Shown here in pieces: positions 5,022 through 50,100 of a stretch of DNA of 64,000 nt. The DNA lies in contig JALMLS010000420.1 in the NCBI GenBank assembly GCA_038496445.1, positions 708,880 through 772,879 of the forward strand, written 5' to 3'. Source of the stretch: Trichosphaerium sp. ATCC 40318. Taxonomy: Eukaryota > Protista > Tubulinea. Under the pieces are notes generated by a model that saw only the letters and a program-made list of their open reading frames with translations, did no database searches and was not told the DNA's origin. The position numbers were made by a program, and so were the translations under genes. How positions within the stretch are numbered: position 1 is the first letter of the stretch; the number at the start of each line of letters is the position of its first letter.

Positions 5022-7109
5022 ATGCGCACCTCAACACTATTGTACAACGCTCCACGTTTTTTACCATGTAACACCATTTTAGGTTGTGCTTGGTGTTGTT
5101 TTTCGCAATCGCCGCATGTGGCAGGCTCCAATACTATGGTATGTTGCTATACTACGCATTTTCATGTTGTTCTGACTTATTGTAGGGGTAAACTACGCTG
5201 GAGCTGGTAATATTTTTTCGCCGTTTTATCACGTGTGATAACGAACTAAATCGCTTTAGAATTCGGCCATGGTTCTTTCTGGCCTAGAGCAAGTACTGTA
5301 GACTATTTTAGGAGCAAGGTACTGTTGACACAAGCCTCAATAGGGCCACGCTTACATAAGCCATTAACGCTAATGTCTGTTAGCAATTATGCACTTTCCG
5401 TCTTCCTTTCTTGTGGCAACGGCTTCAACAACCAAGTGATTTCAGCGTAAGATTTGGAGAATCAGGTTATTGGAACTCGTTACAATCTGCTGTAACGATG
5501 ATAACAAACAAAGGATCATATGTAATCATTGATCCTCATAACTAGTACGTAGCAGTCTTTTTTTCGTTTTTTTTGTGTGCACTGTTTTTTTTACTGTAGT
5601 TCATGCGTTGTATTAATTTCGCGCTAGCGCTCGTTACACCTCCAACAAAAATTGTGAGGGTCCTTGGTGTGGTAGTGTTCTTGGTTCCGGTCAAGCATCT
5701 GCCGACGATTTTATTGGAATGTGGAGACTCTTTGCTGATAAGTACAAGAATAACGGCAGAGTAATCTTTGTACGTACAGATTGAGACCTGTGTACTATCT
5801 TCGCTTACCTGTACTACAGGGCCTGATGAATGAACCTCACGACTTGGGTGGTCTTGGTACCCGGGGTTGGAGAGATATTGCTCAGAGAACAATAAACGCA
5901 ATCAGACAAAGAGGTGAGTAATCATGTTCTCTGTTATGTTACAATATTAACTCTTCGAAGGCGCTAACAATCTCATACTTGTTCCTGGTAATCACTGGAC
6001 TGGCGCTCACTCTTGGATCAGCAGCGAGTGCGTTGAATATTACTCTAAGATAAGCGTACTGACGATCATACAATAGCAATGACAATAACTTTGGAAGTAT
6101 TACTGATCCTGCAAATAACTTCGCAATTGAAGTTCATAACTACTTTGACGGTGACCACTCTGGTACTTCTTCAGGATGCTCTTGTACGATTGATGATTTT
6201 ACTACCCTCAGACTTATCCATACTATAGCGAATTGCGCAAGCCAATTGAGCTCCTTTACAACCTGGGCAAGAAACAGAGGTTACAAAGCTTTCTTGGCCG
6301 AATTTGGCGGTGGAAGAAACAGTGGTTGCTCAACATGTATCAGACAAGTTCTTGAGTACGTAATTTGTGTTTGTTTTTAGACTTCTATCGCCAAAACTAA
6401 ATGTTGCTGCAGCCATATGGAATCGAACAGCAATGTTTGGATCGGTTGGACTTGGTGGGCAGCAGGAGAAGAATGGCAAGATGACTACCTATTCAACTTA
6501 CAACCTGTAAATGGAGACAGACAACAACTACCTTGGTTGACACGTGTCGCTTCATGCAGCGGTGGTAGCGGTGGTAAGTACTACATTTTTCTTCATAGCC
6601 TTTTCTAACTTTTATTAGGTCCACCACCTCCTCCTCCTCCTCCTCCTCCTCCACCACCACCTCCTCCACCACCATCGAGTGGTACTTTCACACTTCGTAA
6701 AGGGAACGGTCAGAGTCATGCCCTTGACGCTGGTCCAAATAATGTCAACAATGAGAACGTTAAACTGTGGAGGCACAATATTTACAACCCTTACCAGCAG
6801 TTTGTTGAAATAAATCGTGGAGGCGGTTTTTACTCATACAGAAAGATGAACACAAACTTTTGTTTGGATGGTGGCAATGGCGGTAGAAACGGACAAAACG
6901 TCAAAGTGTACAATTGCAACAGTGGAAACCGAAACCAACACTGGCAAAAAATCAACGTTGGAGGCGGAAAATTCAGACTTCAGAAGCGTAACTCTCCTGG
7001 ATTCTCTATTGATGGAGGTACTGGTGTTTCTAATAACCAGAATGTTAAATTATGGGCATCTAGTAACTCTAATGGAAACCAACAATGGGTGTTCACAAGT
7101 GTTCCTTAA
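5022..7109 (+). CDS. Secreted GH5 endoglucanase (GH5_5-like) + 18-Pro linker + ricin-type beta-trefoil (CBM13); about 11 introns
   Basis: Spliced product has GVNYAGAEFG, FRLPFLWQRL, IIDPHNYARY, GLMNEPHD (acid/base), GNHWTGAHSW, EVHNYFD, FLAEFG (nucleophile) and WIGWTWWAAG, then QxW-type repeats (YQQF, NQHW, NQQW). Confidence 0.93.
6621..6674 (+). repeat. CCA/CCT trinucleotide run encoding 18 consecutive prolines (interdomain linker)
   Basis: Read directly from the sequence at the start of the last GH5 exon. Confidence 0.9.
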
Positions 7110-44540: not shown

Positions 44541-46496
44541 TCAAGAGCAAGAAAATCTTGATGAAATTACGTTGTAGACTTTTGTGGAAAATGTCTTTGC
44601 CATATTAACATCCTTATCGCATTGACTGTTTGTACACCTGCCTTCATTCTTTTTTACTATTTCTATTAACTCAGGCATTTTTTTGGCATAATCACAAGCA
44701 AGATCTTTGTCATTTGAAGTAAAATGTATTCTCGCAAGATTTGTAATAGCAAATAGTTTTTGAGGAGTGTTAGGCTTCATATCTTCTAGTACCTTCTTAA
44801 GAGTTTCGACACCCTTAGTTTCTCTTCTATACGCTAATGCGTATACAGATAATTGTATATGAGCTAACGCACGTGAGTCAAACTCCAACACAAAAAAAGC
44901 GCAAAGTGACAACGTACCACTAACCGAGTTTGGGAAATTCTTTGAGACATAATCAAAATATTGCATGCCTTCGTCTATTCGTCCTTGGGTTAGCTTCTCT
45001 TGCGCAATGCCTGTATGTATATCTACAAGTACGTCTGAAGACATAGGATGAAGATGCCAAAGTAACAACGCAACAAACGTTATCTGAAGAAGTACAAGCC
45101 TATTTGCTTTAAAATTCAACACAGAACATAACCCAATTGCAATCGCTGCTAAGCGTGCTCCTGGAACAGGTAAGGATAATAATACTCCTGAAGGTACTAA
45201 TGTAATAGGTAATTTCATCCAAGTAGTTGTAAGTATAGTTGTAGGAAGATGCGAGTCAATATTAAAAGATGAGATAGCTTTTGGAATAGGAGAGTAGAGT
45301 AAATACAACGCCATCATATAGTAAGAGAATAAACCTATCCCAAGCCCTACTTGGTTGATTCCAAAGTGGAAAGACATACCAATAAATGCTGTGATATACC
45401 TCATCCATGAACCTCCCATGCCTTGTGTAAGTGATAACCACAGGAGAATAAGTAGAAGGCATTCTGTGAATACTGAAATATTTGCCATAACGAACCAAAA
45501 GTCAAATCCTAAAATCTTCGCAGCCACTAATGGCTGTACAACTGAGTTTGTCCATGGGCTAACCATACGTGGAAATAAGTCCCCTGATAGCCATTTCGCA
45601 TCGATCTTACATACAATAGTCCAAAAATAGACAAAACTGAACAAACAATGAGATGACATTACATGACACTTTTGTGAGAAAAAAAAAGGAAAAAACACAA
45701 ACTGCCCCAATTTGTTTTCTTTTGTTTTACCTTGTCTGTAGTATTATCAAAAGGGTAAGTTGCCTTTTATCATCTACTCCTTGAATACCAATAATAACAA
45801 GAAGAAGAAACAAAAAGTAATGATGCTGATAGTTGTCGATTTGAGAGATAAAATACAGAGCACCATTCAACATAGGTAAACTCCAAAGAGCATATTTCGG
45901 TGGCGTTCTCAGTATTACTACGCTCCTATACATAACATTATTCAATTGTAACCAACAAAGGTATTTAGAGTCCAATTAAGTGAATGGAAAGATGAATTCT
46001 GATGAATTCTGCTAAAATACGTACCATGCGAGATAGCTCTGCGTTATCCACATACTAGCCGAGATATTGCCACTAGAAAACCCAAGGGCTTCTTTAACGG
46101 TAGTATATAACGTCGTTTCAGTCAAGGTAGACGGAATAGTAAAGTTCTGCGCAATTAGCGCTAAATCACCGTGAGGTACATTAAAATCATCTAACGTTGC
46201 GTATTTACTGACTCTCGTGAGCTAAAAAAGCGATAAGTGTTCTCTATGCTGTTGGACCAAAAAAAAACGGTTATACGTACCTGTATGAACATGTCATTTG
46301 CGTATAACGCAAAGAATACTATAAAGAAAACGCCCACTACAGACGCATCTGGAAGGTTTAATGACAAACAGTTGTTTTTGAAATGTCTTCCCACTTTTGT
46401 TTGTTGTTGTATTTTTTTTGAACTACTCGCTTTATTGGCCTTTTCAGGGTTTCGCATAGCCTTTGAGTTACGGCTTCTATTACGGATGGTCGACAT
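44541..46496 (-). CDS. HTTM-domain (vitamin K-dependent gamma-carboxylase-like) membrane protein with C-terminal TPRs; start at 46496 or 46457
   Basis: FFALYANDMFIQ..DFNVPH, SQIDNYQHHY, VYFWTIVCKIDAKWLSG, GMSFHFGI...IGLFSYYM, then TPR-like helices. Confidence 0.82.
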
Positions 46497-46934
46497 TTCG
46501 CTAGCAAATCTGAAAGAAGATTAAGAATGTATGTTGACACCTTGTTGGTTTGTACCTAACCACGCTTTTTGGAACTTAGGTGCTAGTGATGGAGTTAGTA
46601 TTTGAAATGAAGCTTATGTACCTAGTTTTATGACTGAATCCTCTTTTACGTCTATAAATGTAACGCGACAAGAGTTTAAAAGTGACAGAGAGCTGAACAT
46701 GCCTAGTACGCACGAATACGTTTTAATGAGCGTAAAACTTAGTAAAAAGCTTTGCGTACGCCAAGTGAAACGCTCATCGTCAATCTCTAGCTGTTTTTGT
46801 GTCCAATTATTTGTGTAAGCCGTATAGTAATAACGGACTGGAAAATAAGCTTGACAAACAAAAAATAACAACCAAAATAGTCCTAGGAGTTGCTCAGAAG
46901 TATTTTCAAAAGCCAGCGTACGTGTGGTTTGCAT
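46358..46934 (-). CDS. Small HTTM-partner protein resembling the post-HTTM region of VKGC-like proteins (QxxxPxRYY...ERFxWRMF)
   Basis: Spliced: MQTT..LFWLLFFVCQAYFPVRYYY...DDERFTWRMFSSL...CRVTF...KAWLDLLAKCRPSVIEAVTQRLCE...KTTVCH*. Confidence 0.75.
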
Positions 46935-47171
46935 CAAACTTTAAAAGTCACCACATTTCTCTTAAACTGAAATTTACGCTTGGAGACAATAATAGCTTGT
47001 TGTAGAAGTAGTATTTGTACAGCGTGGTTTTGTAGGTTTAGGGCGGCCTGGGCTTTTTGGAAAGAGGTTTAATAAACACTTGCTATTCACTCCACGAGCG
47101 CGTTAGTACCAAAAAGAACAAGTTGACGTCAACCGTTGCATTTTCAGCCTCCGATTGGCCCAATAAGCGTT
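46935..47171. promoter_or_regulatory. Bidirectional promoter (HTTM pair / myosin) with back-to-back ATTGG and CCAAT boxes
   Basis: Divergent starts about 240 bp apart; CCGATTGGCCCAAT near 47151-47164. Confidence 0.4.
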
Positions 47172-50100
47172 ATGGCATCTAAAAACCTCAGTTCCGATGA
47201 TCTTGCGGCGTTAAAAAGACGGGAGCGTCGATTAGCCGGTATTTTGGACTATTTATGTCAGCAGGCACAGATCTAACACTCATTAGCCAAACGAGCGCGA
47301 CAAGCAAAAGAAGCCGAGGCTAAAAAGCAAAAACTAAAAAATGCACCTGTCAAGACGACCCGCATGATTTCTCCTCGTACTTATGCCAAATCAGCGGTAT
47401 GAATACGTACCGGAAATTTACTTCTAATACATTTCTAGCCAACAGTTGAAGGCACTGAAGATTTTTACGTCGGTAGGCGTGTATGGGTAGATGTACGCGC
47501 TGAGAAGCATTTCTAGGCACTTTGATTAAAGTTAAAGAAATTCAAAATCCTATTTTTAATTAAAACAGTAGCGGTCACTTCTGATACTACTAGGCACGCG
47601 AATCGTTTGTTCCAGGCGTAGTGTCACATATAGATGGAACAAGTGTCACTATAACGCCTGATGATGACTCAGACGCACGCACACGCTCGATTTAAGCCAC
47701 AGCTAATTATTTCGCCTTTATAGCCAATAACAGAAGACTACAATAGCGTATTTGTTAGAAATCCGCCTGTACTTGAGGGCACAAACGATTTAACTGCCTT
47801 GTCTTATCTTCACGAAGCCGCAGTGTTACATGGTATTAACGTGCGATACCAAAAGGATTGTATCTACACTCTTAGCGGCTCAATATTAATCGCTGTACGT
47901 TTTGCACTATTCTTAACAGTGATAAACGTCTAGAGCTTTGTTGACGTTGTTTGTAGGTTAATCCGTACAGAAGGCTTCCTCTTTATAGTTCAGATATTAT
48001 AGAAACGTATGCACAAGCTACAGAAGACACATCAGGTCAATTACCACCACATATTTATTCTATTGGAAATCAAGCCTACAAGAACATGAAAATAGAGGAT
48101 AAGAATCAAGTTATACTTGTTAGTGGTGAATCAGGCGCAGGTAACCTAATAAGACAGTTTAAATGTAAGGATGTCAAGCAATGACATTTATTTTAGGAAA
48201 AACTGAAACGACTAAATTTTTGCTTCAATTTTTTGCCGCTATGGGAACAGATGACCCTGAAACTAATATTGAAGATAAAGTACTTGGTAGTACACCTATC
48301 TTGGAATCTTTTGGTACCAGCAGTGTTTAACTGAAACATTCTAATCATGTGCTAAGGAAATGCTAAAACGTTGAGAAACGACAATTCTTCAAGGCATGAC
48401 AACAGTATTTTTTGCATTTCAATAACTTTGCCGTTTAGATTTGGTAAACTTATTGAAGTGCAGTTTGGAAGTAGCGGTAGTATATGCGGTGCTAACATAA
48501 CAACGTATTTGCTTGAGAAATCAAGGATTGTTACACAAGCCAAGGGAGAAAGAAGCTACCACATTTTCTATCAGGTAAGTTTTGTGTTTTGAAATTATCA
48601 TGTGTCTAACTTTGTTTATTTCAAAGCTCGTTAAAGGCCTAGAAGAACCTCTTCGAACTGAATTAAGCTTATCATATGATCCAAATGATTACTTTTATTT
48701 AAACCGAGGAGATTGTACAACTGTAGATAAAGTAGATGACGCTAAGGTGTTTGAAGAGACAAAAAAAGCGCTTGAAGTTGTAGGTATTACAGGATCAGAA
48801 CTAAACAGTGTATTCCGTATTATTGCCGCCATCCTGCATCTTGGTAATATAGAGTACGATAGACAGCATGTAAGAGTTTCTAATATCTTTCAGGTTTGTT
48901 TCTGGTGTTGATACAAGTGGTGAAGACGAAGATGAAGTAGCAGCGATGGTTTCTGATGAACCGTTACAAATTGCTTGTGATGCTCTTGGTGTTGACTTCG
49001 AAGGAGTTGCTATTTCACTTCTTTTTAAAGTACAACAATACCTTTCTGTTCAAATTATTTACCCTGGTAATTTTAGATGCTTAGAACAGGTATTGAGACA
49101 TTGAATACACCAAGAAGTCCTAGTGCTGCAAGTAAAGCACGTGACGCTTTAGCTTTGTTGATTTATTCTCGATTATTCGATTGGTAAAATGCTCCATAGT
49201 ATTTTGGTTTATGCTGACAATGCTTTCGTTCTATAGGCTTGTACAACGTATCAATGTTTCTATTGATAAACGGGATAAAATGGTCAATTTTATTGGTGTT
49301 TTGGATATCTACGGATTCGAGAGTTTTGCTGTAAATAGCTTTGAACAATTTTGTATTAATTACGCTAATGAGAAATTACAACAACAATTCAATCAAGTAC
49401 GCTTTTCTTTTTCACGTGATAAGGTATTTAACTGTTAACTGTATTTTTTAGCATATATTTAAAGTAGAGCAAGATGAGTATAAAAAAGAGAGTATATCTT
49501 GGGAGTACATTGAGTTTGCTGATAACAAAGTACAGTATTTTTTTAATGACATTGTAAGTTAAATTCTGATGATTATTAGTTTTGTATTGAGCTCATAGAA
49601 AAGCGTCTTGGTATTCTATCTATATTAGACGAAGAGTCAAAAGTAAGATCAGCTACTGACAAGCGATTTGCTGAGTACGTAGTTCGCACGAGCATATTGA
49701 TATTGGAACTAATATATTTTTTTCAACAGGAAACTATATAAACATAATGGACGTCATCCTTACTTTACAAAACCGCGAATGACTGATAACGAATTCGTTA
49801 TATCTCATTACGCTGGTAAAGTCACATACTTGGTAACTGAGTACGTATTAAAGCGAAAGATTCTAATGTATTTCAAGACCTTTTTTCTCTAAGGCTGTCT
49901 AGTTTTATTGTAAAGAACCGTGATTACATAATTGGGGAACAAATTGCAGAGCTCAAAGAGTCTACAGATGAATTCGTAGCAGATTTGATGGAATGGGATG
50001 TCGTAGATACAACAAATGCAAAATCTACATTTGTTTCTATTGCATCTCAATTTAAAGCATCGCTTGGCTCACTCATGGATACAATACATGAAACAACACC

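Follow-up and report, generated by a model that had tools for sequence, protein, structure and literature searches.

Gene models of the overlapping pair

We analyzed a stretch of 64,000 nucleotides (nt) from the genome of the amoeba Trichosphaerium sp. ATCC 40318 (contig JALMLS010000420.1, positions 708,880 to 772,879), hereafter the window, whose minus strand carries two overlapping, intron-containing open reading frames (ORFs), named ORF A and ORF B (Table 1). An initial annotation, made from the sequence alone, had proposed that they encode a split gamma-carboxylase-like system as an overlapping, operon-like gene pair. This proposal is supported by our analysis, in which A and B correspond to residues 382–489 and 56–308 of the vitamin K-dependent gamma-glutamyl carboxylase (GGCX), respectively, in permuted order. 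The motifs on which it was based lie where they had been placed: QAYFPVRYYY and ERFTW/RMF in ORF A and YQHHY, FVYFWTIVCKIDAKWLSG, FH..IGLFSYYM and a TPR-like tail in ORF B. A tblastn search detected no paralogue of A or B elsewhere in the window.

Transcript data consisted of RNA-type contigs from four public runs, in which parts of both ORFs are transcribed and spliced. Five introns are seen as joints in spliced contigs (44917-44864, 45730-45637, 46024-45926, 46621-46583, and 46759-46703): the first, of 54 nt, lies in ORF B and the last, of 57 nt, splits the ERFTW/RMF motif of ORF A. A further intron of ORF A, 39 nt long (46921-46883), is revealed by the 15-nt loose end of one contig, which matches 46922-46936. 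The earlier gene models were right in that both ORFs are spliced and had overlooked two introns, 46921-46883 in the first exon of A and 44917-44864 in B. The contigs of the four runs have zero coverage between 46066 and 46560 and none bridges A and B; in this zone, the A3/A4 junction, a run of eight A (A8), and the first intron of ORF B are supported by the spacing of the protein-family alignment. One 77-nt contig of run X9 joins 45711-45728 and 46856-46877; it is low-complexity, T/A-rich, and combines opposite strands, and is probably an assembly chimera.

The overlap contains the last 45 sense codons of A with its stop and, in the −1 frame, the first 46 codons of B. As noted in the initial annotation, the sole ATGs ahead of the first HTTM helix of B are those at 46496 and 46457, both in the last exon of A and in its −1 frame. 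No ATG is found between the stop of A and this helix, so that B cannot start 3′ of the stop without losing helix 1 and needs a start inside the overlap to retain its first transmembrane (TM) helix. The A8 run also reads as annotated, CAA AAA AAA in the frame of A, with a heptamer of the X XXY YYZ type (A AAA AAA, 46419-46413) in the zero frame.

Table 1 Features of the ORF A/ORF B locus. Positions refer to the window, except in the last row, where they refer to the loci named.
Feature	Position	Strand	Description
ORF A	46358..46934	minus	131 aa spliced; ATG 46934, stop TAA 46360-46358
ORF A exons	46934-46922, 46882-46760, 46702-46622, 46582-46556, 46509-46358	minus	
ORF A intron	46555-46510	minus	predicted; exact spacing in protein-family alignment
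ORF B	44541..46496	minus	549 aa spliced; ATG 46496, stop TGA
ORF B exons	46496-46281, 46221-46025, 45925-45731, 45636-44918, 44863-44541	minus	
ORF B first intron	46280-46222	minus	predicted
Dual-coding overlap	46358..46496	minus	139 nt; B in −1 frame relative to A
Second in-frame ORF B ATG	46457	minus	would make the overlap 100 nt
A8 run	46412..46419	minus	codons CAA AAA AAA in the frame of A
Hypothetical 207-nt intron	46349..46555	minus	A3 donor to acceptor ccttccag/ATG at 46348
Lys codon of CKIDAKW (ORF B)	45606..45608	minus	aligned with GGCX catalytic Lys218 (profile-to-GGCX alignment)
TPR-like region of B	44679..45011	minus	weak TPR_6 and TPR_8 matches on exon
Divergent intergenic region	46935..47171		between ORF A and plus-strand myosin gene
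Loci of faulty public gene models	L004 2501-4725; L005 2501-4831; L006 2501-4762; L051 3607-5205		

Predicted domain structure of proteins A and B

Protein B begins with a basic tail and an HTTM domain, followed by further TM helices, a TPR-like region, and a Cys motif at the C-terminus. The Pfam HTTM model gave a sub-threshold match on the last exon of ORF B alone (E 0.005) and 47–55 bits on the orthologues of B (PF05090, cut-off 27.7), and a family profile that includes the B exons of the window matches human GGCX at residues 56–308 with an E value of 7e-17. In the latter alignment, the Lys of the B motif CKIDAKW pairs with the second Lys of GGCX VKKLDADW (Lys218), the Glu of TECLL with Asp263, and the Asn of FHFGINQ with Asn290; the roles of the aligned GGCX residues are taken from a recent study (10.64898/2026.03.26.714578). 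By its sequence, B is assigned to the HTTM / VKGC superfamily (PF05090), with the equivalent of Lys218 kept. TPR proteins are strongly matched by the B family profile and clear TPRs are present in the bacterial relatives. The TPR domain of B, which probably holds the substrate, suggests that this substrate is a protein or a peptide.

In protein A, a short, slightly positive N-terminus precedes a single TM helix bearing QAYFPVRYYY. The protein also contains the DDERFTWRMF motif and a domain with Cys residues (..AWLDLLAKCRPSVIEAVTQRLC.. ..VCH-stop), and is homologous to the A proteins of dictyostelids and bacteria. Its N-terminus, single TM helix, and four conserved Cys fit a lumenal domain. The likeness to the post-HTTM segment of VKGC proteins claimed in the initial annotation is weak in sequence, as PF22777 matches ORF A below its curated cut-off (E 0.006, 17 bits versus 27.7), and is borne out by structure. 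Weak PF22777 matches recur across four family members, with E values of 0.071, 0.3, and 0.66 in the relatives of A, and each of them falls on the beginning of the profile; a scan of A against NCBIfam, SdpA-type families included, gave no match.

The structural query was the soluble part of the A protein from Dictyostelium cf. discoideum, modeled with AlphaFold2 (AF2) at a predicted local distance difference test score (pLDDT) of 78. The matches of this orthologue model include atlas clusters with PF22777, by itself or combined with PF05090, at template-modeling (TM) scores of 0.61–0.69, and small Myxococcota proteins in atlas clusters. The model aligns to residues 382–489 of GGCX (9bum_A) with a root mean square deviation of 2.8 on 92/108 residues and a Z of 4.5, which is not significant alone; this is the very segment predicted by pairing the FTWRMF motif of A with YSWDMM of GGCX. 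With the full-length A model, Foldseek returned no match and the long TM helix dominated the VIA-align results, only the soluble part being informative. Judged from these models, A is a membrane-anchored protein with a predicted VKGC lumenal domain fold, equivalent to approximately GGCX 382–489. In addition, one Bacteroidota atlas cluster is made up of small 134-aa proteins that consist of the VKGC lumenal domain only, and split HTTM/lumenal systems may thus be wider than the Myxococcota family.

The same two-frame layout in other amoebae

The layout with B at −1 relative to A is found in Dictyostelium discoideum, Dictyostelium purpureum, Cavenderia, Acytostelium, and the environmental contig L001. 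The overlap lengths across the six sequences, window included, are 139, 157, 181, 166, 175, and 154 nt (154–181 nt in the five others), always in the −1 frame. In D. discoideum, Cavenderia, and Acytostelium, A runs as an intact ORF of about 160 aa, with the ATG of B inside its last third, in the −1 frame. L001 carries both ORFs uninterrupted (A at 44-547 and B at 391-2151) with flanks of 43 and 28 nt, and L002, an independent assembly, is identical to it. In D. purpureum, an intron lies within the overlap and both frames are preserved across it.

An exhaustive search with the last exon of ORF B as query yielded 57 relatives of B at 25–42% identity; a word-indexed homology search with the same exon gave zero matches. 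Those that are named belong to Amoebozoa (Dictyostelium, Cavenderia, Acytostelium, and Stenamoeba) and share a common architecture of HTTM domain, multiple TM helices, TPR-like region, and C-terminal Cys motif. Protein A has been called as a separate small protein by other annotators in D. cf. discoideum, D. purpureum, and Heterostelium. We considered and rejected the annotated dictyostelid fusions as proof of a single permuted polypeptide, because these loci consist of two frames bridged by ad hoc introns. Three fused public models need correction, XP_012749902 (Acytostelium), XP_004357960 (Cavenderia), and KAM9959863 (D. discoideum), and a fourth, XP_003293853 (D. purpureum), is truncated and begins inside HTTM helix 1. 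Within the set of papers searched, none links HTTM and Dictyostelium.

In the family alignment, conservation of ORF A extends as far as its end (W.DL..CR..VIE....LC, followed by a Cys right before the stop), and its frame continues past the A8 run (KKYNNKQ....VC-stop versus KKQYKNQQ....NC-stop in the family). When D. discoideum and D. purpureum are compared, no stretch is as conserved in its nucleotides as the overlap, with an identity of 0.82–0.83 versus 0.61–0.69 in the flanks; this is consistent with dual coding and not decisive. Codon-usage log-odds did not distinguish the two frames of the overlap.

Bacterial operon and origin of the pair

A profile of A was run against one genome per prokaryotic species, and the neighborhood of each hit was inspected for homologues of B. 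This survey, which carries out a check suggested in the initial annotation, found 41 A-like loci, mostly in Myxococcota; 35 of these have an HTTM(-TPR) gene directly 3′ of the A-like gene on the same strand. B is at −1 relative to A in 28 of the 35 pairs, and in 22 a start codon (ATG, GTG, or TTG) overlaps the stop of A by 4 nt (RTGA). Such a 4-nt overlap forces the downstream gene into the −1 frame, so that the −1 relation in eukaryotes is most simply explained as a relic of this junction. No A–B fusion was present among the bacterial loci examined, and no neighbors beyond the A/HTTM pair are conserved in bacteria. Among the explanations listed in the initial annotation, descent from a bacterial operon is therefore the favored one, given the shared gene order and frame, and the data support that both A-first order and −1 frame were inherited from a Myxococcota-type two-gene operon.

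Some bacterial loci show peculiarities. One Acidobacteriota metagenome-assembled genome (MAG) carries the A/HTTM cassette twice, on two contigs (L043 and L044), with identical A genes; the L043 pair is located between transposase and integrase genes, and the HTTM frame of L044 is broken by a stop near 6866-6870. A Guaymas deltaproteobacterial MAG (L014, 1238-3066) has no ATG, GTG, or TTG near the stop of A in the HTTM frame, and its sole candidate B starts are 109 and 151 nt upstream. Judged from this locus, a long A/B overlap may already be present in some bacteria.

A quick maximum-likelihood tree places the eukaryote-like B proteins, that of the window among them, in one group with a Shimodaira–Hasegawa-like approximate likelihood ratio test (SH-aLRT) value of 96; the remaining 74 rows comprise every bacterial locus sequence, most P-numbered rows being of unchecked origin. 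As this tree is unrooted, the bacteria-to-eukaryote direction is deduced from the distribution and the operon structure. The spliced contigs and the flanking myosin gene indicate that the locus of the window is a genuine eukaryotic gene and not contamination.

The myosin motor gene (47172-49500, plus strand) is multi-exon, with short introns of which several begin with GTACGT or GTAAGT, and diverges from ORF A over about 240 bp of common upstream DNA, presumed to be the shared promoter of both. The divergent myosin gene and the intergenic region leave no HTTM exon 5′ of ORF A; ORF A is therefore the 5′-terminal unit and not the tail of another HTTM gene. Stand-alone A-like genes were also observed in two AT-rich contigs (L007, 4001-4636, and L008, 3-410), the former with a nearby cyclin gene and thus eukaryotic in appearance; no HTTM frame overlaps or follows either gene in the available DNA of these contigs.

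A and B as two proposed subunits

In GGCX, the N-terminus lies in the cytosol and the C-terminal domain in the lumen. The strongly basic tail that precedes helix 1 of B fits a cytosolic position. Any A-to-B fusion would put helix 1 right after the lumenal domain and invert the HTTM domain relative to GGCX. The canonical order of GGCX, one chain with HTTM first, is not that of the amoeba locus, where separate ORFs in different frames encode the lumenal part first. Because of the inverted topology of a fusion and the separate bacterial genes, we take A and B as two subunits. The locus is thus predicted to encode a two-subunit GGCX-like HTTM membrane enzyme, of which we infer both the A–B complex and the chemistry.

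Translation of ORF B

Sequence poor in ATGs upstream of a start codon is a classic mark of leaky scanning. From the ATG of A to that of B, the six species together contain 8 ATG triplets versus 33.7 expected from the coding density of B. Out-of-frame ATGs number 2 versus 18.5 expected when the codons of A are resampled synonymously, and 0 of 5000 resamplings was as low, although the species are related and these P values overstate independence. All five dictyostelid-type sequences use CAC GAC or GAC GAC in the (H/D)DERF motif. In D. discoideum B, Asp is GAT in 18/18 and His CAT in 9/10 cases, which makes CAC and GAC rare codons here. Since GAT ahead of GA. would give rise to an ATG, the rare codons avoid ATGs. 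The five dictyostelid-type sequences have ACAATGG or GACATGG around the ATG of B, which in the window has G at −3 and T at +4; the sole in-frame ATG left upstream, the Met of WRMF, has the context CGTATGT. ATG depletion and contexts together point to scanning from the 5′ end of A. The single out-of-frame upstream ATG of the window is located in GAT GAG of DDERF (46817-46775, offset 118 of the A mRNA); it opens a 14-codon ORF that ends 94 nt before the ATG of B, so that reinitiation would still be allowed.

A separate transcript for B would be the main alternative. B would then be made from its own shorter mRNA, from a promoter inside gene A, the overlap being an operon leftover with no translational link. 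The lack of any contig joining A to B in this genome and the good context at the ATG of B speak for it, as does the general knowledge that compact genomes commonly have internal transcription starts. It leaves unexplained, however, why ATGs are avoided over 260–350 nt of A before the start of B, rare codons included, and this depletion argues against a separate B transcript. The intron in the D. purpureum overlap, moreover, serves both frames, and L001 and L002 hold both ORFs, with ends that hug the pair. For these reasons, we regard an internal promoter as unlikely, with perhaps one chance in a handful.

Two other routes would fuse A and B, and both would yield the inverted topology described above. 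The first is programmed −1 ribosomal frameshifting at A AAA AAA, which would make an A–B fusion beside free A. B is invariably at −1, and the canonical heptamer stands in the frame of A in the window and in Cavenderia, with A AAA AAC in D. discoideum. The heptamer is, however, absent from L001 and Acytostelium, and the A-rich heptamers (3/5 sequences examined) occupy non-homologous positions; no stable RNA structure follows (folding z 0 to 0.33, with 0.2–0.3 for the A8 run of the window); the open −1 frame begins, directly after a stop, with a conserved ATG and is already accounted for by the bacterial RTGA overlap; and the ancestors were separate proteins, with zero fusions among the bacterial loci examined. 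Frameshifting, which the initial annotation had also put forward, is accordingly given little credence.

The second is alternative splicing past the C-terminal part of A, as in MOCS1, giving a fusion of the N-terminal part of A to B. The window does hold an in-frame acceptor at 46348: a 207-nt intron from the A3 donor would join A1–A3 in frame to B at DASVVG. Introns join the two frames in the public models of three dictyostelids, and human MOCS1 offers a precedent (10.1101/429183). The public models disagree with each other and remove the conserved A domain, A is annotated alone elsewhere, and L001 is unspliced at the junction. The 46555-46349 splice is absent from the contigs, which have no coverage of this region. 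We had first suspected the 46348 acceptor to be a true splice site, with the ORFs intronic, and dropped this idea as it would delete the conserved C-terminal domain of A; the last exon of A being conserved coding sequence, the acceptor is unlikely to be used in the main form. Such splicing is, in our judgment, as improbable as frameshifting.

Finally, the one-base assembly error considered in the initial annotation, an A9 run hiding a single fused gene, is effectively refuted: homopolymer runs are error-prone and this one has no read coverage, but the frame of A aligns with the family after the run up to the terminal Cys and stop, and the two-frame layout recurs in five other, independently assembled species.

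A model for the conserved overlap

We therefore favor, as the probable explanation, an overlapping pair derived from a bacterial operon, whose two HTTM/VKGC-superfamily subunits would be made from one mRNA by leaky scanning. A Myxococcota-type operon with a 4-nt RTGA overlap between the stop of A and the start of B would have fixed the −1 frame. The pair would then have been transferred into an amoebozoan ancestor and gained introns, the start of B would have shifted about 135–180 nt upstream to an ATG within the coding region of A, and the C-terminal codons of A would have been overprinted with the basic cytosolic tail of B. A single spliced mRNA would express both proteins: some scanning ribosomes would initiate at the ATG of A, and others would pass it, together with the weak-context ATG of WRMF, and initiate at the ATG of B.

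Several points weigh against this interpretation, beyond the relatedness of the species in the ATG statistics and the low structural Z. Human GGCX was not reached by A in phmmer and A-family profile searches of PDB sequences. In dictyostelids, the ATG of A itself does not stand in a clearly weak context. No B lies adjacent to some eukaryotic A-like genes (L007 and L008). L001 was taken as a transcript solely from its ends hugging the gene pair; L001/L002 and the shared intron of D. purpureum are only suggestive of one mRNA with both ORFs. Lastly, as the transcript contigs leave 46066-46560 uncovered, we infer a common mRNA in the case of Trichosphaerium.

With somewhat less than even confidence, we extend this model to a broader proposal: the operon junction would persist as a dual-coding overlap of 140–180 nt, the 5′ part of A would be kept AUG-free for leaky scanning, and the GGCX lumenal segment would be separable from the HTTM domain. 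If true, two-part enzymes are perhaps ancestral and single-chain GGCX a later fusion. Conserved cellular overlapping gene pairs are, to our knowledge, rare in eukaryotes, and this one would have a traceable origin, the frame offset of the operon junction being still visible; it would be a clean case of a polycistron adapting to scanning translation. As D. discoideum has the same arrangement, leaky scanning is testable in a model organism. An HTTM epoxidase-like domain and a carboxylation-linked lumenal segment occurring as two subunits, in bacteria as in amoebae, would also make it possible to study the two halves of the GGCX reaction separately and to seek a new class of substrates.

Comparison with known systems

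GGCX combines the HTTM domain (PF05090) and the lumenal domain (PF22777, VKGC_lumenal_dom) in one chain. Like it, B aligns over residues 56–308 with an equivalent of Lys218, and A has the lumenal fold, aligning to 382–489 with FTWRMF facing YSWDMM; residues 384–415 of GGCX are reported to be needed for carboxylation (10.64898/2026.03.26.714578). Unlike GGCX, the amoeba pair forms two polypeptides with the lumenal part encoded first, A spans just about 100 residues of the lumenal domain, and B carries additional TM helices along with a TPR domain and a Cys motif. A close counterpart is the uncharacterised cassette of A-like and HTTM-TPR genes of Myxococcota and other bacteria, which shares the families, the gene order, and the −1 frame. 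It differs by an overlap of typically 4 nt (RTGA) versus 139–181 nt in eukaryotes, by the absence of introns, and by a B protein without the long basic N-terminal tail and without the C-terminal Cys motif.

A siderophore operon is reported to have been transferred horizontally into yeasts (10.1101/399394), likewise a bacterial multi-gene unit kept together in a eukaryote. In contrast to it, the amoeba genes overlap, share coding sequence, and keep the frame of the junction, and the unit is common to distant amoebae. The study of the yeast operon is said to have found some shared transcripts. MOCS1A/MOCS1B and viral leaky-scanning mRNAs resemble the pair in producing linked proteins from overlapping frames of one gene. 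In bicistronic MOCS1 transcripts, the first ORF alone is reported to be translated, and other products to arise via alternative splicing (10.1101/429183). The amoeba pair differs in its derivation from a bacterial operon junction and in that a fusion looks topologically unfit. The truncated gamma-carboxylase-like epoxidases of giant viruses (10.64898/2026.03.26.714578), finally, possess an HTTM domain that keeps Lys218 and lacks residues 374–418 in the same chain. No small ORF with the missing segment was found for them in that study, whereas in the amoebae ORF A would supply it.

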